64,000 bases of DNA from Lepidodermella squamata (taxonomy: Eukaryota; Animalia; Gastrotricha), in the NCBI GenBank assembly GCA_047495785.1, contig JBLDXI010000010.1, forward strand, positions 496,001 to 560,000. The letters run 5' to 3'. Positions within the stretch are counted from its first letter, which is position 1, and each line of letters opens with the position of its first letter. Shown here piece by piece: positions 782 through 56,771 of this stretch. The notes beneath the pieces are model-generated. The model ran no database searches and was not told the DNA's origin. It was given only the letters and a program-made list of their open reading frames with translations. The position numbers and the translations under genes are program-made.

Positions 782-2020
782 ATGGCATCTCTGGAGAACA
801 TGGTGAGCCGGTATAGCCGACAATTGTTACTCCCTGAAATCGACATTAATGGTCAGAAATCTATGGCCAGCTCTCGAGTGTTGATTGTCGGTTGCGGAGG
901 GCTCGGCTGTCCTTCTGCACTCTACCTATCTGGTGCTGGGATCGGTCATATCGGACTGTTAGACGGAGACGTTGTAGCTGTCGACAACTTGCATAGACAG
1001 ATTGCTTACAGAGAGGACAATGTGGGCAAGCAAAAGGCAGAAAGCTTGAAAGATGCTATCACACATTTGAATGCAACTGGCGGCCTCACTGTCACTACAC
1101 ACTTGACATTTTTAACGCCCCAAAATGCGGTAGATATTGTGAAAGACTACGACATTGTTCTTGACTGCACGGATAACGTAGCCACTCGTTACCTAATTAA
1201 CGACGCTTGTGTACTTGCGAACAAACCTCTTATTTCTGCAAGTGCTCTGCGTTGGGAGGGCCAATTGACCATATATGACTCGAGGCGCCGCAATGATGTT
1301 AGATCTGGACCCTGCTATCGTTGCTTGTTTCCGGAACCACCACCCGCTGCCGCTGTTGGATCTTGCTCAGCTAATGGCGTTGTAGGGCCGGTCGTTGGGA
1401 CCATGGGTACTTTACAAGCCCTAGAGACCATCAAGTTGATATCTGGCTTGCCGGAAGTTCTGATTGGCCGAATGCTGCTATTCGACGGTCTAACAATGAC
1501 TTTCCGCAATGTTAAACTACGTCAACCTAATCCAGAATGTGCTTTATGTGGTTTAAATCCAAGGATTAATTCTCTAACGGAGCTAAACGCCATTACTGCT
1601 GTTTATTTAAACCCTCCTGCGGCATGCGTTGTCCCTTTGAAACTTATCGACCCTTCTGATCGTTTGTCACCATCAGCTTTTGACGCTTTACGTAAATCGG
1701 CAGAACCATATCTGCTGATTGATGTGCGGCCACGTAATCACTTTGAAATTTTCCACATCGATGGCGCTGTAAGCATTCCACTCAGCGAGATGAATAATCG
1801 GTTCGAAGAGGTACTTGACTTGTGCAAGAAAACTTATACTGACTCATCCAAGGTGCGCGTCATCACTGTATGTCGGCGAGGAAATGATTCTCAACGTGCT
1901 GTGGTAGCGTTGAGGGAAGGTTTGGCCAAGCATGGAGCAAAGGACGTCGTATTGAATGATATTGTGGGAGGTTGCACTGCCTGGAAAGAGCAAATCGACC
2001 CCAGCTTTGTTTTGCTCTAA
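782..2020 (+). CDS. MOCS3: Adenylyltransferase/sulfurtransferase MOCS3 (Uba4/MoeB-rhodanese fusion), intronless
   Basis: RYSRQLLL, GCGGLG nucleotide-binding motif, NLHRQ, DCTDN, CYRC and CALC Zn pairs, and a C-terminal rhodanese domain with the CRRGNDSQ active-site loop. Confidence 0.96.
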   Translation: MASLENMVSRYSRQLLLPEIDINGQKSMASSRVLIVGCGGLGCPSALYLSGAGIGHIGLLDGDVVAVDNLHRQIAYREDNVGKQKAESLKDAITHLNATGGLTVTTHLTFLTPQNAVDIVKDYDIVLDCTDNVATRYLINDACVLANKPLISASALRWEGQLTIYDSRRRNDVRSGPCYRCLFPEPPPAAAVGSCSANGVVGPVVGTMGTLQALETIKLISGLPEVLIGRMLLFDGLTMTFRNVKLRQPNPECALCGLNPRINSLTELNAITAVYLNPPAACVVPLKLIDPSDRLSPSAFDALRKSAEPYLLIDVRPRNHFEIFHIDGAVSIPLSEMNNRFEEVLDLCKKTYTDSSKVRVITVCRRGNDSQRAVVALREGLAKHGAKDVVLNDIVGGCTAWKEQIDPSFVLL

Positions 2021-3279: not shown

Positions 3280-3618
3280 AAAATCACTACAAACTTTCTA
3301 ATCAGCCACACGTACATCATACATTCTAGCTATAGCCACTTTGGTTCATCTCAATAATAACATGGGTTTTGTTTTGATAGCCTCGTTGCGAGAACGAGAT
3401 GAAATATATTGGTTTTCACTCGATAATTTTGCGGCCAACATTTTGCTTCTTTTATTTGCTTTTTTTCTATTCGCGACGTGTCACAATTCAACAATTGTTA
3501 AAATTATTCTTGATCTTGTGCGATGTATTCAAGACGATGATGAAGTAAAAAAAAATATGATGAACAATTTACGTTTTTTTTTCGCCTGTTTTTTAGTTGG
3601 TATTTTTTGCTGAAAAAA

Positions 3619-4464
3619 ATGCTTCGAAGTTTGGTTGGTTCTTTGCAGAGACCTGGGTGGTTTGCTTCGCGGCTTCTATCTAGCCAATCTGCTGTTACCC
3701 CGTCTTCATCATCTACCCCGGTTTTCAATTCTTCAGTTGGGAAATTGTATGAGGAAGCCAGCGAACCGGACTCGCTGATTCGCCGGCTTGAGGTCGAAGT
3801 TCGCGGTCACGATACGGCAGTTTTGAATAGCTACGAGAAGTTTCTTCGAATTGTTTGCGAAGAACTGGGCTTGAACCTTGTTAATGTGTAAGTAGCACAC
3901 TGAGACCATAAAATATTGAGGAATTAATTGGAGATGTTATGCTAACAATTTTTTTGAATTTTGGAAATTTATTACTAATTTTATATTTTTTTAGAAATAA
4001 GGATCAGGAGGGAAAACGCTGAAATTTTAGAATTTCAATATTTAAATTTTTTCGAAATATTTTCAATACTAAAATTAAGGTTCTAGCTCTAGATTTATCT
4101 AAATTTTGCGAGTAAAATTTTTTGAAATTTGAATTTTTTATTTAGCTTGTCTCCTCCAACTGCTCATGAGCGACGAACGGTGCTGAAATCGATTCACGTG
4201 CACAAAATTCACCGAGTTCAGTACGAAATGCGGACGCACTTTCGCGTGTTCCAGCTGAAGCATTTGACCGGCTCGACGGCCGATACGTTTCTCGAGTACA
4301 TTCAACGCAATCTGCCCGAGGGCATGGCTATGAAAGTTACGAAATCACGCGTCGAAAGCCTGCCCGGCCACATTAAACCACCGGCTAATGCCGTGAAGAC
4401 GAAAGAGCCAGACTACGAAGCCGACCAAAACGAACACTACCCACCAGCTGATGTGCCAAAATAA
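3619..4464 (+). CDS. MRPS10: Mitochondrial ribosomal protein S10. Exons 3619-3887 and 4146-4464
   Basis: Presequence-like N-terminus, [33 protein letters not shown] and [19 protein letters not shown]. The 258-nt intron 3888-4145 keeps the frame. Confidence 0.95.
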
Positions 4465-4510
4465 ATTCTAGTGAACATTAATTTTTCGAAAATTTTCTAG
4501 AATTTAATGA

Positions 4511-4968
<458 letters not shown>

Positions 4969-5009
4969 AAAAATCCACCTTAATTTTTATAGTTTTTTTT
5001 TAATTTAAA

Positions 5010-5993
5010 ATGGCTGATTCTGATTTGCTGTCCGGCTACTCGCGTTCAGTCGCGCTGGACGATTTCGACGATGCGAGTGATGAATCAGAGGCGGAATTGG
5101 GCGTGGAATCTGAATCGAAAGACCGGCAATTACAACCGCCTGTTCTGCCGGCTTACATTTCATGGCATCCTATGATCGCCGAGCATTTGCTAAAAAGCAA
5201 CGGCGCCCGGTTAGACATGCGTTTTCTCATCATTGCAGTCGGCCAAAAAGCGTCCGATGTCCTCGAGGCGGTAATTGACGTCGACAAATTGGACATTAAT
5301 GGCTCGTTGTTCATGCCGAACAGCAGTCACGCGACGCGGGCTGATCAAGTTTCGATGAAAATCGCCCGAGAAACGCCGCAATGGGCCACCCTACAACCGC
5401 CGCATTCGTCGAATGAGACAAATTTCATTTATACAACAGTTGACATGGTAGCGGCGTGTGGTTTGTTCCACACGGCTGGGCAGGATAGCAAGCGCCGCGG
5501 TGCGGCTGTTGATTCGTACCCGATTGGCTCGGCCGTTGCTAAGCAACTTATCGACGGGTCGTTTAACACGAATCGCCTGCAACAGGTGGTTGTTTTCGAG
5601 GTCCTACCCGCTGATCGTTATATTGGCGACCGGCCGGCCTCGGACCTCCTATCCGCCCCAGTTGTCCGCTGCCTGAGGACGTCGGCCTACGACGGCCCGG
5701 ATATGACGCCGATTCGTGATTTGGAGCCGCCGAATTTGGTCTCTGGCCTATCGGCGGATTTGTTGTGCCGTTGCGAGTTGGTTCGCCAGTCCGCCCTGAT
5801 GTTGACGTGTTACTCGGACGCGAATGTCAACGAGGTGTTGCATGCGGTTTATGAACCGTTGTTCCGCGCCCTATCGAAGACGATTCACTTTTCGCTACGC
5901 TTCAAGGACGAATCGGTGGCGCATTTGAAGCGAGTCAGCGAGCGATCGCGCCGAAATCGCGATTTGGACGACCTGGCTGGGTTGTACATTTGA
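5010..5993 (+). CDS. PSMG1: Proteasome assembly chaperone 1 (PAC1), intronless
   Basis: Acidic N-terminus after SR, LEPPNLVSGLSADLLCRCE...MLTCYSD resembling the PAC1 C-terminal region, and a terminal HbYX motif (LYI). Confidence 0.8.
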   Translation: MADSDLLSGYSRSVALDDFDDASDESEAELGVESESKDRQLQPPVLPAYISWHPMIAEHLLKSNGARLDMRFLIIAVGQKASDVLEAVIDVDKLDINGSLFMPNSSHATRADQVSMKIARETPQWATLQPPHSSNETNFIYTTVDMVAACGLFHTAGQDSKRRGAAVDSYPIGSAVAKQLIDGSFNTNRLQQVVVFEVLPADRYIGDRPASDLLSAPVVRCLRTSAYDGPDMTPIRDLEPPNLVSGLSADLLCRCELVRQSALMLTCYSDANVNEVLHAVYEPLFRALSKTIHFSLRFKDESVAHLKRVSERSRRNRDLDDLAGLYI

Positions 5994-8900
5994 AACAGAA
6001 ATTGGAATGCGGAATTCATGTCTGAAATTAGGCTGGAAAGCTCAAAATTTAACTTCGAAAAAAACCTTAGCCTTGTGACTTGTGATGCTTGTGATGTTGG
6101 AATGTGGGAGAAACAAGATTCTTGGAAAAGCTACATTTTTTTAATTTTCAAGTTCAAAATGAAATGAAAATAAAATATGCAAAATAATTGAAATTCGAAT
6201 AATAAAATATAGATTTCTCGAATATTTTCTAATATGCATGTAATAAAATGCTCAAAATGTGGGTTTTTTATTATGGATTTGAAAAAAAATTTGAAATTTT
6301 CAATTTTTTTAAGGTGGCCATTTTTGAGAGTTCGCGGATTTTAGCGAATTAAATTCCAAATTTATACCGAAATGTTGGCTGCGATCGGTTGCATTTCTAT
6401 CAGCCACTCGATTTTCCAATTGAAAGATTGGTATTAGGATTACCTGGAAAAAAGTTTGCAAAATTATTCCATGTGAATTTTATGATATAAATCTATATTC
6501 TTGAAAAATTATTCCATTCCATGTGGAATATTTTCCCAATGGATTTTTCCCATTTTTGCCTTCGTGCCAATTTAAATAGAAATGAATAATTTCAAAAATT
6601 TCTTCAGTTCTATTTTTAGCTATTTTCCGTGGTCTTGTTTCTCCTTCATCACCCGACAAAATATTATATATTTGCGTTTCGAGTGGAAAAATAAAGCAAA
6701 CAAAACATGTCATTTTTACGGCGACATTTTCGTTACATTTCTTCACGATGTGTTTTTTTTATTCACCGTCTCGACAGTGATGAGTTGCTGCGACAAAGAG
6801 CGGAATAGAGTGGAAGTAGGTCTCTTTTTCAGCCTCGGCACGCGCCTTGTTGAGGCGTGTATTTTGCGTGCCGCTGTGTCATCGAGCTATTACTTGGCCG
6901 CGTGGGGCTCTCTAACAAACGAGCATGCTGACAACAACAACAATATCATCATACCTTCATCGTACACGCATAGCAGCAGTAGGTTAGGGTATTTTATGGC
7001 GCAGCGAACACATTAAGGCGGACGCGCGTTATGATACAAGGAGGTGGTGGTATAATAATAATTGTATCACGTGCGAATTCGCCGTAATAATAATAATCAA
7101 GCTGGTAGCCGACAGTACACAAGATGAAGATGACGATGATGATGGTGACTCAGCCGCCCGAATGAATGGCCGGTATAGCTGCACTCCACCCTCTTCAGAA
7201 CTTTTTAGTCGAGAATATCGCCTTCATTAGCTTGGCGTTCGTTTAGCTTGAAGAGATATTTAGCGCCACGAGTGAGCGCGCAGGTTGTAGATGCGCGCCA
7301 CCGCCGGTGCGCGCGCGCGCGACATCTTGGCGCGCAAAATAATGGGCACATTAAATAGACATGACGCGAGGTATTTCGGCGGAAAATATGCGCGTGCGCG
7401 CGACATTATATCGCAATGAAAATATTATTATTATACCGCTTAATATGGCTAACAATAATAATTTTTATACCTGCGGTAAAGCGGGTTAACATGAAACACG
7501 TGCCGTCGCCCGCCACATCGCTTTTGACTTGGCATAAGCTACTGGGCCTAATATAGGTACTTAGCTAACTATTAAAGCCCTGTCGTCTCGTTCGAGTTCA
7601 CGCTTCGCCAGTAATAGACGTGGTTAAGCGGGAGAAGAAAACGTCGTCGGCTGGAATAATCTTGTGAATGAATAACGCGCTTTATAATATGAGCTCATTA
7701 CTCTAATCCTACGCTAAACAACAATAATTACTTATCTCTGAAAATTCCACATCTTTAGAATTAAGTGGCTGATTTTGCACGTTTTTTTTCGGTTCAATTC
7801 TTTTTAGGGTATTTTTCTGATATTTTTTTCGGAGGGCTTTTATTGCCACTCAATTACGCCAGAAAATTTCTATTATTTATTATCTCAACTTTCATCGCAG
7901 ATTTTACTGTCGAAATAACAAACAACACGGCGGAAAAACACGGCCAATTTCATTTTATCCGAGGTTCGATAAGATTTTGTAATCAAACCCACGCTATTTA
8001 TAGTGCGTGTTTCGAATCTCCCTACCGAACAATAATACCGCGATATAAAATAGCCACCCTGCTGTTGCACTGTTCAGCCCGGCCCATCAGGGTGCGTTTC
8101 GCTTTGTTGTGTTTTATCTATCTGACCGGAATTTTTCGCGGTATATAAAAACGCGTGTATAAATTGCGCCGAGATCTATAATCCTGTGGAACCCAGCGTG
8201 TGTGCGGTTGCATTTAGTGTTTTCTGTTTTAGCGTTATTTTATTGGCCATCATCATCATTATCAGTGTGTGTATATATGTAAGCATATATGAAAGCTTCG
8301 TCCTGATATCGCGTGCAAGCCTGCTGCGATTGATCAATCAACTCAGGTGAGCGCATTCCTATATATCCACCTCAGCATTGTTCGCGATTATAAATGATTA
8401 AGGTTAGGGCGACCCTCCTTCACGGACCATGGAAAATTACCTGATGGGGCCTTAATAAATAATGGGTTAATAATTTACATTACCCGGTATAAGGTTTTAT
8501 CTTTATTAGCCACAATAACAATTTCATTGTTGCGATCACGCGCGCTCTCTCACAAATTAAAACATTATCGCGCTCGCCCGCCCACTCATTCGTTTTCACG
8601 CTGGTACCAATTATTGCGTATGTTACGCCCGCGATGAAAAATAACCGGAGATTTTCAGCAGTAAATAAAAACGTCTTATCGTTTTGTTTATTTTTCCATA
8701 CGGGTATAGCCGGCGGTAAGTATATAATAAACTAGCGGCGATGACTTTACTCGGCTTTCCTCTCTCTCAGGCTACTCAAACATCGACGACGCGCGATATA
8801 TACTGAGACAAAGGCGCCGCCTTAGTATCTTTTGTGCCCGCACACCTTCATATGGTATAAAACCACATAGCCAGCGTCTGGAAACATGTGTACACCTGAG

Positions 8901-51582: not shown

Positions 51583-52794
51583 TCACACACGAACGAATCG
51601 AGGACCTATTACACTATAAGAGCTATCTGTTGAGTATCTTTCTACTTCTTCATAGTCCCGAAGAATTTCAGTGGAAGTGTCGCTCGGAGAGTCGCAAGAT
51701 ATCGAGAAATGCCACCCAGACCCCGCACTTATTCCAAGGCAATTCGGCTCAACATCGACCCGTAGCTCTTTTGAGAAGCCGCTGTAGACCATTGTCGGCA
51801 GGCGACTTCTTTCCCCGACGCAGCCGCTGTCAAAAATCGCCATGCCGTCATACCAAACTGTTATTCTGTCTCGAATTTTGTATGTGTCGTAGTTGAGTTT
51901 GAACGAGCCGGAGTTACTCGCAAGGCTGTACCGTCTTGTCACCGGGTTATTCGATCCAGACATTTGAAGGCCGTCGCAAGGCCGGCATGCAGTTTGAGAG
52001 CAAATTGTTCCATTCAGTGATCTCACGTGGCATTGCTGGCCGCAACTTAGATGTAACTTATTCGGTTTAGCATGACTCACCCCAGTCCGACCGTCGCTTA
52101 ATAACGAGTAAGCCTTCCAATGAAGAGGTCGGCATGGGTCGTTTGAGTCTCCGAAGTAGGAGCACAAGTCTTTCGGTAGACCTAGTCTGACTTGGTAAAT
52201 TCTAGCGCCGTCATCCAAGGCGCGTACCAATGATACCCCGGAAACAGGCTCCGGTGATCCTTCAATAGGGATAACTCGTAATTTTGACGCATCTCCGAAT
52301 CTAATGCCGATAGCCGTCACTCGTAAAATAGACCGCTTATTCCTTTTAGGCTTTGGAAAATTGGATGCTCTTGACATTGAGCTCGGCGGGATTTGGACGT
52401 AGAGATAGACTTGCCGCCCTTCTTCCGCTACGAAGCTTGATGTATCTAGATTGATGCCAGCTTCGTTGAGTGCTATTTGATCGACCTCACGAGGTTCAAA
52501 CTCTTTTGAGCCAGATTTAAGGATTTTCACTGGTATCGAATAAGTTCCAGTTGGGTATTTCGTTTGATCAGCAAGGAGCTCGTCCGAACCTCGGTGTGCC
52601 GTTTTCAACGGCTCTGTTGTTGATTGGAAATTTGATTCTGTCAGAAATTCAGCATCGGAAGATCTAGATATCATGGCATTAGCTCGGCCAGAGCCGTAGT
52701 TTTTGTTGTACATATAAAGCAGCATGACAACGCCGATGACGATCAAAAGAGCAGCAACAACCATGGCCACTCCAATGACCACGGCGCGCTTCAT
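51583..52794 (-). CDS. Uncharacterised type II membrane (signal-anchor) protein, intronless
   Basis: 403-aa ORF with an N-terminal TM, an RNKR site, a Cys-rich linker and a C-terminal beta-rich domain (YDTYKIRDRITVWYDG..FDSGCVG). TATA-like tatata lies ~35 nt upstream. Confidence 0.8.
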   Translation of the reverse strand: MKRAVVIGVAMVVAALLIVIGVVMLLYMYNKNYGSGRANAMISRSSDAEFLTESNFQSTTEPLKTAHRGSDELLADQTKYPTGTYSIPVKILKSGSKEFEPREVDQIALNEAGINLDTSSFVAEEGRQVYLYVQIPPSSMSRASNFPKPKRNKRSILRVTAIGIRFGDASKLRVIPIEGSPEPVSGVSLVRALDDGARIYQVRLGLPKDLCSYFGDSNDPCRPLHWKAYSLLSDGRTGVSHAKPNKLHLSCGQQCHVRSLNGTICSQTACRPCDGLQMSGSNNPVTRRYSLASNSGSFKLNYDTYKIRDRITVWYDGMAIFDSGCVGERSRLPTMVYSGFSKELRVDVEPNCLGISAGSGWHFSISCDSPSDTSTEILRDYEEVERYSTDSSYSVIGPRFVRV

Positions 52795-53850
52795 TTGCAG
52801 CGATCAATTTCAAGTTGCGTAAATTGTCCTATATAAAAAAGGATAGTGACGATTTTAACGCGCGAAGTGTCATTACTGCCAAGTATCAGTCATAATTAAT
52901 TCACGTGAAAACAAGTGCCCTAGGATGAATAAACACACCAAAGGCGTAAAAACCGCGGCTAAATGCTACCGGGCTACTATTAGAGTAATAAAATTTCTTA
53001 AATAGGGCGCGGCCTCGATGCGTTTTGCGCACGCGCACAAAAAAGCTGATCGATTGTGAAAACATATTATGAATAGCGGCTACGCGCCGTTTCGCGCCGC
53101 TTTTTGAGTATACAACAACCGCGAGCGCCGTTTCGCAGTTTTTTATATACCATATAAGTGGTTATTCGAGCAATATTTGGTTTTTGTAGCTTGTCTTCCT
53201 ATAAATCTTGAGTAACCTACTTGAAAATTGTTCAAATATGACTTTTCAAACAATTTTACATATTTGGAGACATGCACATATTGATTTTAGCTACATTCTT
53301 GTGTTAAGTACGTTAGAAAAAAACTAATTCAATGATGCCTCTTTCTTGCGTTGCTGGAATCTCGTATAGCAGTTATATACTTACTTTAAGCTAATAGTAC
53401 ATGATTTTCAGTTGTTTGGTTTTTTTCTCATCCACATGTTGAGTCAGTCGATCAATTGATTTGATATTCAATCATGCTTGTTTTACATAATATAACTGGT
53501 GATTTTTGGGTAGCGTAGTAGTAGTATCGAAAATGCGCGGCGCGTGTATGTAACATAGCAGTAAGCCAACGCAGAAGTCCGCAAAACTCTCGACTGGCCG
53601 GCCGGGTGTATTAAATCAATCAACTTGTGGCTAGTAAAATGTAAATGAGACCGCCTTATCGCCGTTGTTGCGAAAAGCGCGCATATATACAGAAAAAACA
53701 CGAGAAAACCATAAAAGAGCAGTTTGTATTTTAGAACAGTATCCTTAAAGAGTAGTAACATTACTTCCTACTACGTGTTACAGATGAAATAAAAATTCGA
53801 ACCATTGAAAAATTAATGCAAAACTTGATGTTAATGGAATTTCAAGGTCA

Positions 53851-56244
53851 TTATGGCCTTCGTCTTGGAGTTGTCGTTGATTGAGGAGAATTTGCCGTAG
53901 GTCTGACGCAAGTCGAGCTCCGCGTTTGTGAATTGATGGGCGCAGGTCTCGGGTTCACCAAGGTAACGCGAACAGAAGGCAATAACGTCGATCGGCTGAG
54001 ATAGGGCAAGGTCTTAAATGCCATATTTCTATCGCGATATCGTGGCAACTGCCCAGCCGAGCCCTCAGGCCCGTTTCCGCTGATTTCTATCGAATGCTCG
54101 CCCGTGAAGTTAAGCTGGACTATTGCCGTATAGATTCCGTCACAGGGTCCAACATCACCGGCCAATCCGTCGTCAAATAATTGAAATTTCGTTGTTACGC
54201 TTCCTGAAATCGACTCAACTGTCGCCCAGGCTTTGGCATCCAAAATTGGTCGATCGATCGCAGCAAGTTTAGCTTCGATCTTGATACGGCTTGTATCGTT
54301 TTTAACTGGTAGAGAAACTGTTCCTGTCAACTCCACTGGTAGATTTGGATTGGTGGCAGCGGAAATTGATGTTTGAATAGCTACATCCCTGGTCGATGTC
54401 GACCTAACCGTTATATTCCACCTTCCGACCTGAATATCAAAGCTATGAGAATGAAAACCTCACAAGATGAGAGTTTGAACTCACCGAGCCAGGAATGAAG
54501 GAGCAAGTAAGAATCTGTTGAGCTTTGTTGTTGGTACAGTTACCGCGAATACTCGTCTGCGGATCGTAGGACACCGTTGTTCCTGACTCATCATCTTCAT
54601 CTTCGGCCTGTCTTCGCCGTCTCGTTCGTCCGTTACTAACCTTTTCGTAGGTTCCAGAAACATCGCCAGCGGAGCTATCGTATTCTACTGAAGCCGTGAC
54701 TCGAGCATCAACATCCATACCTTCGTCCACAGAAACGGGTATTGTGGCTGGCTTCCCAGCTGGGATGGTAGCCTTGGATCCTCCTTTAGGCCTAGCTTTC
54801 GACGCATAGGCACACTCCAGCCTGCTAGAAATCGTATTGAAGATGGTAGTCATAGAACCGCCACTTAGGGAGAAGGCTAAACCACCGGTTTCGTCGGCAA
54901 AAGTCCTGAGGGCAGGGTCTGCACTCACCCCCAAAGCGATAGTGACCACTGTAACCTTTGCAGCCTTAACTTGGGGCAAGCAGCGGCCAATCCAAGGCGG
55001 TGTGCTATCCTCCCCATCAGTTAGCAACACCATCACATCTTGATCGCAATTCCCAGTCGTGCCAGTCGATAGAACTTGCAAGCCACTGAGAACCCCGGAG
55101 CAAATATTTGTACCTCCGTCTGCTGCTAGGCTCTGTATTGCTGATGTCAAAACATTTTTTTCAGGGCTATCTCTAACGAATTTATCAGCGCTGTTTAGAA
55201 TGGTGGTTCTTGACTTCAACACACTTGCTACTGAGTTGAAGGTAACAATTCCGACCTCAGCGCCTCTGTTCAAGTTAGCAATGAATTCGCTGGCTGCAGA
55301 TTTCATGTTACCGAGCTTCCCAGCCTCGCGCATACTCCCAGACGTGTCCAAAACCAAAACATACCGTCTTGAGCTGCAAAATGGCCCTTCTGTACTGAAT
55401 TTACTTCCGCTGAATGGCGTAAAGCATGGCGGGTCGACAATTCCAAGAGCTGTTAGAGTTTTCTGGTAAACACGGTATCTTTCATCAGCTTCCTCCCTCG
55501 GCTGTTGGCTATTGATTGCATGAGATACTCTACCCAAATCATCGCCACACAGTTCAGGCTGAACTCTTGATTTCCAGTAATAATGAGACGATCTCGCAGC
55601 AGCTGTAGCGTCTGTCGACAGCAGTTCTAGATTGTCCAAAAGTGTCGTGTCTCCATACAATTTCGTCGACACTTCTTCATAGTTCTCTTGCCACGTAATT
55701 TGCAAAAATCCACGCCCTATGTATGGCCAATAGCAGTCGCAGTTGTTACACACAGGTAGCTTTGAAGGGAAGTCATTTTGGCATTGCTGTATCTTGGCTG
55801 GGTTGCCTTTGTATTGCTTCACGCAGAGGTCTCCACATCCTTCGGACATTTTGCGTTTCGCTGGATTCTGCCCAGCTACTACACCAGGGCATTTGGTTCT
55901 GTAATTGCAGCCCTCTTTCAGGTCGTTGAAGCCTCGAGTTTCGTGGATGGCTTCAGCTAGAAACATTGCCAATTCCTTTCGCCGAGTGATTCCTGATTCG
56001 GAAATGTGGGCCATGATGGCTGAGAAGTATTCATCTATTTGCTGCGGCGGGGTGAAGCCACTCGAGGTTATTGCAGCTTTCAGCTGATCAATCGTAACTT
56101 GTGACGCTGAAAAGCAAACATTTGTTTTGATGCATTTGAAAACACCACTGACAATTTACCCAGTTCGCAGTCAGCTCCGATCGCATACTGGCTGTAGTTA
56201 ATCAAAACAAATGGGAAAATTAGCGTTAAGGTGGGCAAGATCAT
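53851..56244 (-). CDS. Secreted GH19 chitinase/lysozyme-like + VWA + CLCA-type C-terminal domain fusion. Exons 56244-56160, 56106-54485, 54429-53851
   Basis: GH19 motifs ELAMFLA...HETRGF..LKE and YIGRGFLQITWQENY. VWA MIDAS LVLDTSGSM, GGTN and LLTDGE. CLCA-like PILDAKAWATV and LFDDGLAGD...DGIYT. Confidence 0.85.
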
Positions 56245-56771
56245 ATTCAATTGCCAAGTTATGCCCGCTGAAACGTCAAAACCCTCTTATATTTCAAAAA
56301 TATCGTGTGTTTGACTAATTCAAGTGAAAATCGTGACGACCTTAGACAACATTGAACATTTATACAGTGAGCATCACGTAAAAAGGTGAAAAACGTAATA
56401 AGATTATTCTTTTTTCCAGTAATACCAGTTTAAGATTAGGTAAAATCCAAAAATTGCTTCCTCTTTCAAAGAAAAGCTTAGGAAGTGACGTAGGAAATAA
56501 AGGATGAGTGAAACAATTAAAGGGGATGAAGGATGAAGGGATGCAGGAGGCAGTCGAGGCAGTCGACGAGGATAGCCAGCTTGGTATGTTGGCAGAATAT
56601 ATTCTGCGTGTAAGCCAGCCCAGATGGTTCAATCGGATCGACCTCTCGATTCATCAAATAAGTCGCCTGTGGTATAGTTATAATATTTCTTATTTATTCA
56701 TCACATCTCATCTCAAAATAGCTCCTGTGAAAGAACAGACGAAAAGTATTACAACAGTTTTTAATCCACAA

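Follow-up and report, generated by a model that had tools for sequence, protein, structure and literature searches.

A gastrotrich gene predicted to encode a secreted chimera of a GH19 glycosidase domain and a CLCA-type VWA scaffold

The defining feature of CLCA proteins is a self-cleaving metalloprotease coupled to a VWA domain. Among the eukaryotic GH19 proteins of the "loopless" group, many members have signal peptides and accessory Cys-rich, LysM or hevein modules. The endolysin-type GH19 enzymes, represented here by SPN1S (4ok7), KTN6 gp46 (8p8e), PWe2 (9ms7) and PHROG 181, are restricted to phages and bacteria (PMC8547705). The roles of the proton-donor Glu, the second Glu and the water-coordinating Ser/Thr of GH19 are taken from the same work (PMC8547705).

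In the window, the whole stretch of 64,000 nucleotides of Lepidodermella squamata DNA that was analysed, the minus strand (56244..53851) carries a gene of three exons that encodes about 761 aa. The domain order is putative signal peptide, GH19, CLCA-type VWA, beta-sheet-rich and "inhibitory" domains and a Ser/Thr/Pro-rich tail that has no membrane anchor. We consider it likely that this gene of a small-intron animal is expressed, present in one copy and codes for a secreted chimera, in which a competent GH19 domain replaces the CLCA metallohydrolase, the VWA, BSR and inhibitory-type domains are kept, and the FnIII-like domain and the anchor are lost. The features are as follows.

56160..56244, minus strand: exon 1, with the start codon at 56244; it encodes MILPTLTLIFPFVLINYSQYAIG, signal-peptide-like when read by eye, then ADCEL, and ends in phase 1
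56107..56159, minus strand: intron 1, 53 nt, GT..AG (gtaaat...ttttcag)
54485..56106, minus strand: exon 2, one open frame with both GH19 and VWA
55436..56106, minus strand: GH19 catalytic domain, exon-2 residues about 1-222
55913..55945, minus strand: HETRGFNDLKE with the catalytic Glu pair, exon-2 residues 54-64 (E55 and E64, nine residues apart)
55724..55909, minus strand: loop-3 insert with eight Cys, exon-2 residues 66-127
55679..55723, minus strand: YIGRGFLQITWQENY, the GH19 core motif including the water-coordinating Thr, exon-2 residues 128-142
54818..55369, minus strand: CLCA-type VWA with complete MIDAS (PF00092, E 4e-15)
54611..54628, minus strand: RTRRRR, a furin-type dibasic site in the charged loop after the VWA, exon-2 residues 493-498
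54430..54484, minus strand: intron 2, 55 nt, GT..AG (gtgagt...attcag)
53851..54429, minus strand: exon 3, encoding the end of the beta-sheet-rich domain, an inhibitory-domain-like beta sandwich and a Ser/Thr/Pro-rich basic tail, with the stop codon TAA at 53851-53853
54127-54174, minus strand: calcium loop DDGLAGDVGPCDGIYT in the inhibitory-domain-like beta sandwich of exon 3

The sequence-only reading, made before any database search, had placed a GH19 domain with both Glu and the core motif directly in front of a VWA with intact MIDAS in the same exon, and both domains were recovered there. The first one matches PF00182 (Pfam) with 34.0 bits against a gathering cut-off of 25.5 (E 3.4e-8), and it is also matched by the endolysin family PHROG 181 (E 3e-29) and by the SPN1S endolysin structure 4ok7 in the PDB (E 5e-14). 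The AF2 model of this domain (pLDDT 82.5, pTM 0.81) shows the bilobal alpha-helical GH19 fold. When it was used as a Foldseek query, ranks 1-46 were all GH19, with a target-normalised TM of up to 0.81; the phage endolysins 9ms7, 4ok7 and 8p8e ranked first, and GH19 chitinases came next. In a 60-sequence GH19 alignment, four residues (E55, R131, G132 and Y142) are invariant and four more (E64, G130, Q135 and N141) are shared by 90% or more of the sequences. Our sequence has all of them, together with the water-coordinating T137 within GRGFLQIT; its E55 and E64 correspond to E49 and E58 in endolysin numbering (PMC8547705). Judged by these kept catalytic residues, the domain is predicted to be catalytically competent. 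The typical "RMGN" stretch of the endolysins reads KLPVCNN here. As a correction with regard to the relatives of this domain, the closest characterised ones are peptidoglycan-cutting endolysins and not plant chitinases.

Downstream of the GH19 domain, the protein follows the CLCA plan. The VWA is 40-43% identical to that of shark CLCA1 (E 4e-28), with 39% identity and E 2e-27 in the BLASTP alignment to residues 301-465, and its MIDAS motifs, DTSGS (exon-2 residues 253-257), the Thr within DGGTN (329-333) and the Asp within LTDGED (361-366), align with those of CLCA1. The match to the NCBIfam model TIGR00868 (hCaCC) is collinear: model positions 305-479 fall on the VWA and 562-679 on exon 3. 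Exon 3 also matches residues 563-684 of shark CLCA1 (BLASTP, E 1e-8) as well as NF041940; the CLCA-like beta-domain motifs that had been noticed by eye are thus borne out by TIGR00868 and CLCA1. Its DDGxxxDxxxxDG calcium loop matches the calcium site described for the inhibitory domain of CLCA1 (bioRxiv 10.1101/2025.10.18.683246). Like CLCA proteins, the gastrotrich protein has a MIDAS VWA, collinear BSR and inhibitory-type domains and a putative signal peptide for secretion. It differs from them in carrying GH19 in place of the metallohydrolase; no HExxH motif was found anywhere in the protein, and PF08434 gave no match even at E<=10. The autocleavage machinery is absent too, and in its stead there is the furin-type RTRRRR loop, at which cleavage is predicted. 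Other differences are the lack of an FnIII-like domain, for which neither Pfam nor NCBIfam gave a match past the last CLCA-aligned residue, and of a TM helix: the protein ends about 70 residues past that residue in the Ser/Thr/Pro-rich tail, in which no hydrophobic stretch was seen by eye. Both the RTRRRR site and the missing TM had been recorded from the letters in the same way. These data support the reading that GH19 occupies the CLCA metallohydrolase slot on a collinear VWA-BSR-ID scaffold, as the sequence comparisons suggest and as had been proposed at the outset. Elsewhere in this genome, canonical CLCA genes with PF08434 occupy three loci, one on C7 and two on C9; these paralogues are no closer to the VWA of our gene than vertebrate CLCAs are.

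The architecture had been put forward as one not recognised before, and our searches agree with this. In an exhaustive phmmer search with the GH19 domain, 1140 matches were obtained at E<=1e-3. Among the best 150 of these 1140, identity to our sequence was at most 39%, and a Pfam scan of the 48 long proteins detected PF00182 in all of them and a VWA domain in none. A word search with the whole exon gave 41 matches, which covered the VWA region only (vertebrate CLCAs and bacterial VWA proteins) and included no GH19+VWA protein; the Atlas feature search likewise had no GH19+VWA among its clusters (best score 0.78). A word search with GH19 only returned a single match, P0042, which lies on a eukaryotic-looking metagenome contig of 1.3 kb, and a JGI metagenome scan for orthologues only one distant GH19 with 24% identity. 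No second GH19 was found in the animal's own genome, where our sequence is the sole member. At the C7 locus, Cys-rich repeats lie upstream of the canonical CLCA N-domain; the GH19 profile gave probabilities of <1% against the two candidate exons there (hhalign). Our literature searches turned up neither a GH19-CLCA nor a GH19-VWA fusion. From these searches, the GH19+VWA fusion appears to be unique, and our verdict is a new domain architecture from known parts.

The GH19 domain shares features with both of its described relatives. With phage and bacterial endolysins it has in common the fold, the catalytic Glu pair nine residues apart, the GRGxxQxT core and an insert of about 50-60 residues with an NPxKI-like motif in the same loop. 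It differs from them in that structural alignments give only 22-26% identity, in having QITW where they have QxTG, in the loss of the RMGN stretch, in the eight Cys of its insert, and in belonging to an intron-bearing animal gene in which it is fused to extracellular-matrix-type domains. The highest sequence scores, in contrast, are reached by the eukaryotic loopless group (E 1e-19, 36-39% identity), whose members among our relatives come from zoopagomycete and kickxellomycete fungi, the microsporidian Nematocida, the sponge Ephydatia muelleri and the mosquito Wyeomyia smithii. These share with our sequence the N-terminal FxxAVxxxGF/Y, the Cys pair after the second Glu, QxTW and, in many members, a signal peptide, but they lack the roughly 50-residue insert, possess a C-terminal LEC...GCY cysteine pair that is absent here, and none of those scanned has a VWA.

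In the alignment, the insert occupies the loop that forms the helical lobe of phage endolysins, SPN1S among them, and it is present in the bacterial/phage type and absent from the eukaryotic-type relatives; loop 3 measures 62 residues in our sequence versus about 7-12 in members of the insert-less group. The AF2 model of the insert has low pLDDT and two short helices. The Cys-rich insert had been rightly seen and has eight Cys; it fills the loop of the endolysin lobe and is no foreign insertion at a new site.

As to function, the protein is predicted from its sequence features to be secreted and is probably a mucus- or matrix-anchored enzyme that is antimicrobial or cuts chitin. The GH19 domain would hydrolyse beta-1,4 GlcNAc-type glycans via the inverting two-Glu mechanism of the family. 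The metal ion of the VWA MIDAS would bind an acidic residue of a partner in mucus, matrix or on the cell surface, and binding of this kind would enrich the enzyme at a layer of epithelium or extracellular material. Furin-type processing may take place at the RTRRRR loop and would replace the lost autoproteolysis. Bacterial peptidoglycan is the most likely substrate in our prediction, which we hold with modest confidence; chitin ranks second, as a distinctly less probable one. The enzyme might be chiefly a chitinase and not a lysozyme, with an antifungal or digestive role or one in remodelling the animal's own chitin, an explanation that we hold only tentatively. It draws on the top-scoring relatives, which are insert-less eukaryotic GH19 proteins (zoopagomycete fungi, microsporidian, sponge, mosquito), and the characterised microsporidian GH19 is a chitinase (cited in PMC8547705). 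Moreover, QxTW and the Cys pair C66/C72 after the second Glu are common to our sequence and this group, and C66/C72 appears, by an inferred mapping, to be the loop-3 disulfide that is specific to chitinases in PMC8547705. However, the tree puts our sequence outside the eukaryotic group (98/94), the C-terminal LEC...GCY cysteines of that group are missing, the best matches among solved structures and PHROGs are endolysins, and no chitin-binding module was found by Pfam.

The origin of the GH19 domain leads to a further alternative, in which it came from bacteria or phages by horizontal transfer and was joined to a CLCA gene that the animal already had. Several observations speak for this: the insert lies in the loop of the bacterial/phage endolysins and resembles their inserts weakly (NPxKI; 6.2 bits against an HMM of bacterial inserts, a score reached by 3 of 2000 shuffles), the nearest structures are phage endolysins, the domain is the sole GH19 of the genome, and the endolysin type is confined to phages and bacteria (PMC8547705). 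Separate trees of the two halves had been proposed as a check for chimerism. Other observations speak against capture. In the IQ-TREE analysis of GH19 our sequence stands alone on the internode between the bacterial/phage endolysin-type sequences and the insert-less eukaryotic ones; 21 bacterial-type rows lie on one side of a branch that excludes it (98/93), and the insert-less eukaryotic group excludes it as well (98/94). On this placement, it falls into neither of the defined GH19 subfamilies. In addition, bacterial sequences reach about 30% identity at best, base composition is fully host-like (GC3 of the gene is 0.46, similar to neighbouring genes), and derived-looking motifs are common to our sequence and eukaryotic GH19. 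An old eukaryotic lineage that retained the ancestral loop accounts for the same data, and we regard horizontal capture as doubtful. The suggestion of a grafted glycosidase is supported with respect to the features for secretion and the CLCA scaffold, but not with respect to "acquired", with a domain nested in neither GH19 group, a host-like GC3 and relatives in fungi, a sponge and a mosquito. Integration into the host genome was rightly read from the spliced introns and agrees with the ordinary animal genes nearby (MOCS3, a Josephin-domain gene, a proteasome chaperone, a UDP-glycosyltransferase and a family-C receptor); a search for repeats around the gene as signs of mobile elements found none. 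The MOCS3 neighbour reaches 43-48% identity at best, with matches scattered across insects, echinoderms, cnidarians, sponges and a rotifer.

It is improbable that the GH19 domain is enzymatically dead and acts as a lectin-like glycan-binding module on an adhesive VWA protein. GH19 is known to include chitinase-like lectins, such as the CHIT 3 and CHIT 4 groups (PMC8547705), and the endolysin-specific Arg/Gly positions are altered in our sequence. Against this, the two catalytic Glu, the Thr that holds the water and the invariant residues of the core are all intact, and the variation within GH19 is mostly synonymous. Between the sequencing runs compared, we counted 28 synonymous versus 9 non-synonymous variant sites overall and 21 versus 8 within GH19; the gene is under selective constraint.

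Transcript-like contigs from public runs show that both halves of the gene are co-transcribed and spliced. Intron 2, with its 55 nt and GT..AG ends, is exactly absent from contigs of the runs X1 (867 nt, spanning 54083-55004) and X3 (258 nt). In X1, loose ends at 56160 and 56009 connect exon 1 directly with exon 2; the form seen there is allelic and carries 2 differences. X1 coverage has its limits at about 53749 and 56282, the latter reached by an X1 contig, as expected of a transcript. The RNA nature of X1 is a guess, and its contigs are fragmentary, none of them spanning the whole transcript; the DNA-like run X2 retains both introns. Separate transcription of the two halves had been named as a point to check, and a transcript-like X1 contig (55158-55486) was found to bridge the GH19/VWA boundary. 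That the fusion is an artefact of assembly or annotation, with two genes or a chimeric contig behind it, is hardly credible, as no supporting point was found, both domains lie in one uninterrupted 540-codon exon, and their junction is crossed by an X2 DNA contig (55042-55451) as well as by the X1 contig, which comes from a different study with a different organism label.

Overall, our data describe a gene of moderate importance, as it is one lineage-specific gene with known domains and a predicted function. If active, the protein would offer a natural template for a lysozyme or chitinase that is tethered to a surface and stabilised by disulfides. More speculatively, and with little confidence, the sequence might be read as an animal mucus- or matrix-anchored lysozyme, in which an endolysin-type GH19, so far a matter of phages and bacteria, has been put where a CLCA has its catalytic domain; its disulfide-rich loop would correspond to the phage peptidoglycan-binding module, hardened for the extracellular space, and the inhibitory domain and the VWA might gate or localise the glycosidase. 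If this endolysin-type reading is true, the gene would represent a surviving intermediate from endolysin-type to eukaryotic GH19 and would bear on how eukaryotes obtained the family. Standing alone between the endolysins and eukaryotic GH19, with an insert kept at the endolysin position, the domain is a useful data point on the origin of eukaryotic GH19. For the CLCA family, the gene would mean that the scaffold survives when an unrelated glycosidase takes the place of its catalytic head, and hence that the VWA-BSR-ID unit can serve as a general module for delivery and anchoring.

We found that the GH19-CLCA gene, whose product comprises about 761 residues, is organised on the minus strand as follows.

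56244, minus strand: start codon, opening exon 1
85 nt from 56244, minus strand: exon 1, coding for a signal-peptide-like N-terminus
56159-56107 (53 nt), minus strand: intron 1, GT..AG
56106-54485 (1622 nt), minus strand: exon 2, coding for the GH19 and VWA domains
54484-54430 (55 nt), minus strand: intron 2, GT..AG
54429-53851, minus strand: exon 3, closing with TAA

The protein was analysed one exon at a time. In exon 2, Pfam identified both a GH19 domain (PF00182, E 3e-8, exceeding the gathering cut-off) and a VWA domain (PF00092, E 4e-15). The MIDAS of the VWA is complete, with DTSGS, a Thr within DGGTN and an Asp within LTDGED. Of TIGR00868, the NCBIfam model for CLCA, positions 305-479 match the VWA and positions 562-679 match exon 3. 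By BLASTP, the VWA aligns with residues 301-465 of shark CLCA1 (P0001; 39% identity, E 2e-27) and exon 3, collinearly, with residues 563-684 (E 1e-8). The exon-3 motif DDGLAGDVGPCDGIYT is the counterpart of the calcium-binding loop in the CLCA1 domain that a cryo-EM preprint names the inhibitory domain (bioRxiv 10.1101/2025.10.18.683246). An RTRRRR site is located in a charged loop C-terminal of the VWA. HExxH is absent from the protein sequence, the Pfam scan gave no match to the CLCA N-terminal domain, and by inspection we saw neither an FnIII-like domain nor a hydrophobic C-terminus. Every observation of the sequence-only reading is thus confirmed: a GH19 domain with both putative catalytic Glu (E55 and E64, exon-2 numbering) in one exon with an intact VWA, CLCA-like beta-domain motifs and an RTRRRR site behind it, and no TM.

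Contigs of three public sequencing runs (X1, X2 and X3) were aligned over 53500-56500. Those of X2, which behaves like DNA, span the whole region including the introns, while X1 coverage is limited to about 53749-56282, as expected of a transcript. The 55 nt of intron 2 are skipped exactly in X1 and X3 contigs, and loose ends of X1 connect the 3' end of exon 1 directly with the 5' start of exon 2; the proposed introns are thus supported. The GH19/VWA boundary is crossed by an X2 contig (55042-55451) and by an X1 contig (55158-55486); the latter, being transcript-like, speaks against separate transcription of the two halves. Among the runs, where X1 differs from X2 and X3 in study and organism label, 28 of the 37 variant sites are synonymous and nine non-synonymous (21 versus 8 within GH19), and this synonymous excess indicates that both halves are under purifying selection. 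GH19-CLCA is a real, expressed, single gene. At 55490-55694, and in other parts of the gene, two X2 contigs differ (17 of 205 bases in that segment), nearly always at third codon positions, which suggests either very high heterozygosity or the presence of two strains.

The architecture was not met elsewhere. A whole-exon word search returned VWA proteins only, none with PF00182, and VWA occurs in none of the 48 proteins of at least 340 residues among the best 150 of 1140 GH19 relatives; the partner domains there are PG_binding, LysM, hevein, CBM19, ricin lectin, phage lysozyme, kinase and X-Tfes. An Atlas search gave no close cluster, a scan of metagenomes yielded a single distant GH19, and no description of such a fusion was found in the literature. 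Moreover, searches of the animal's own genome showed that this is its sole GH19. The domain replacement holds, and so does, judged by these searches, its apparent uniqueness.

The scaffold belongs to a family present in the same genome, where canonical CLCA N-domains occur at three loci. Two of them, C9:2991456-2991689 and C9:3003128-3003418 (L007, L006, L008), lie about 12 kb apart and indicate a small CLCA family besides the chimera. The third (L009, G000:C7:1036000-1045999, minus strand, about 3527-8512) corresponds to a canonical CLCA gene with CLCA N-domain, VWA and beta domains, whose upstream exons code for a signal peptide and for defensin-like repeats rich in Cys; hhalign gave probabilities below 1% for the GH19 profile against two candidate exons at this locus. 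The VWA half is about equally close to vertebrate CLCAs (97-103 bits) and to the C7 gene (about 84 bits over two exons), so that the parent CLCA gene cannot be named.

The neighbours are ordinary animal genes, namely MOCS3, a Josephin-domain gene, a proteasome assembly chaperone, a tyrosine kinase, an ankyrin-repeat gene, a UDP-glycosyltransferase and a family-C receptor. A repeat search detected no repeats or mobile-element signs flanking the gene, and GC3 of the GH19 part (0.46) is the same as in neighbouring genes. MOCS3/Uba4 is a single 412-codon ORF (782-2020, plus strand). Since its best identity to any database animal is 43-48%, close relatives of this animal seem to be absent from the databases. 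The next gene downstream (51583-52794, minus strand) lacks introns; its 403-aa ORF codes for an N-terminal membrane helix and a Cys-rich C-terminal half and has no Pfam match.

The GH19 domain itself combines features of two groups. Among relatives of solved structure, the best sequence match is the SPN1S endolysin of a Salmonella phage (4ok7, E 5e-14), whose alignment covers the whole domain including the insert, and the endolysin family PHROG 181 matches with E 3e-29. An AlphaFold2 model from a 60-sequence alignment reached a pLDDT of 82.5 (core above 90, residues 67-124 poorly defined), and all 46 best Foldseek matches are GH19, the top three being phage endolysins. In the same alignment E55, R131, G132 and Y142 are invariant and E64, G130, Q135 and N141 conserved in at least 90%; our domain keeps them all. 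An exhaustive phmmer search against 1.84 billion representatives gave 1140 matches at E<=1e-3, none below 1e-30, the best with 36-39% identity. Most top matches lack the segment equivalent to residues 77-126, and those named are all eukaryotic (Piptocephalis, Dimargaris, Smittium, Nematocida, the sponge Ephydatia muelleri, the mosquito Wyeomyia smithii). Our domain and this set have in common an N-terminal FxxAxxxxGF motif, a pair of Cys following the second Glu, and the QxTW motif. A smaller set, whose named members are bacterial (Enterovibrio and Ferruginibacter MAGs) and some of which carry X-Tfes effector domains, resembles our domain in carrying an insert of similar length at this loop and in lacking the LEC...GCY cysteines. 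The Cys-rich insert of the sequence-only reading is present; it occupies the endolysin-type loop and is more probably part of that loop than a new graft. Scored against an HMM of bacterial inserts it reaches 6.2 bits, as do 3 of 2000 shuffles, which weakly suggests homology to the endolysin lobe, a three-helix peptidoglycan-binding module at the position of chitinase loop 3 (PMC8547705). According to the same paper, endolysin-type GH19 has stayed confined to phages and bacteria (PMC8547705), which makes a eukaryotic protein with endolysin-like features unusual; our domain does not fit cleanly into that subfamily.

Other relatives from public assemblies, P0074, P0050 and P0054, show unusual eukaryotic-type architectures: a phage-lysozyme domain (PF00959) besides GH19 in one, probably P0074 by its N-terminal sequence, defensin-like Cys repeats N-terminal of GH19 in P0050, and two GH19 domains within 246 aa in P0054. 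The only word-search relative of the domain, P0042 (JGI metagenome contig Ga0393293_014082, L010), is preceded by an AT-rich, non-coding stretch of 630 bp that contains a TATA-like box, and probably comes from a eukaryote, despite its source annotation 'predicted chitinase'.

In an IQ-TREE analysis (LG+C20, insert columns left out) the domain lies on the internode, where it is excluded by the bacterial set (98/93) as well as by the eukaryotic one (98/94). A quick tree that includes all 149 rows is in line with placement at the base of the bacterial side. In the separate GH19 tree proposed earlier, the domain is thus nested in neither set. The data do not discriminate between an old transfer of an endolysin-like gene and vertical inheritance of a GH19 from early eukaryotes in which the loop was kept. 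From the host-like composition, the introns and the internode placement it follows only that the event is not recent. The earlier interpretation is partly borne out, in that GH19 stands in place of the CLCA protease domain, while its acquisition is unproven.

The protein is predicted to be secreted, and its GH19 head would cleave beta-1,4-linked GlcNAc-type glycans via the family's inverting two-Glu mechanism. We lean towards bacterial peptidoglycan as the likely substrate, because endolysins are the nearest characterised relatives and the domain retains the endolysin-position lobe. Chitin is a serious alternative, since the eukaryotic group, to which the highest-scoring relatives belong, includes a known chitinase. 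The ligand of the VWA MIDAS would be an acidic side chain on a partner. The CLCA1 VWA domain is described as engaging TMEM16A, and CLCA1 as a major mucus component (PMC11231702, PMC6851300); the fusion would thus keep the enzyme within a mucus, matrix or cell-surface layer. The lost self-cleavage may have a substitute in the furin-type loop. In CLCA1 the inhibitory domain contacts the metallohydrolase; the inhibitory-type domain retained here may touch the GH19 head in a similar way. Overall, GH19-CLCA is of moderate interest, with a function predicted from sequence, as a new domain architecture assembled from known parts.
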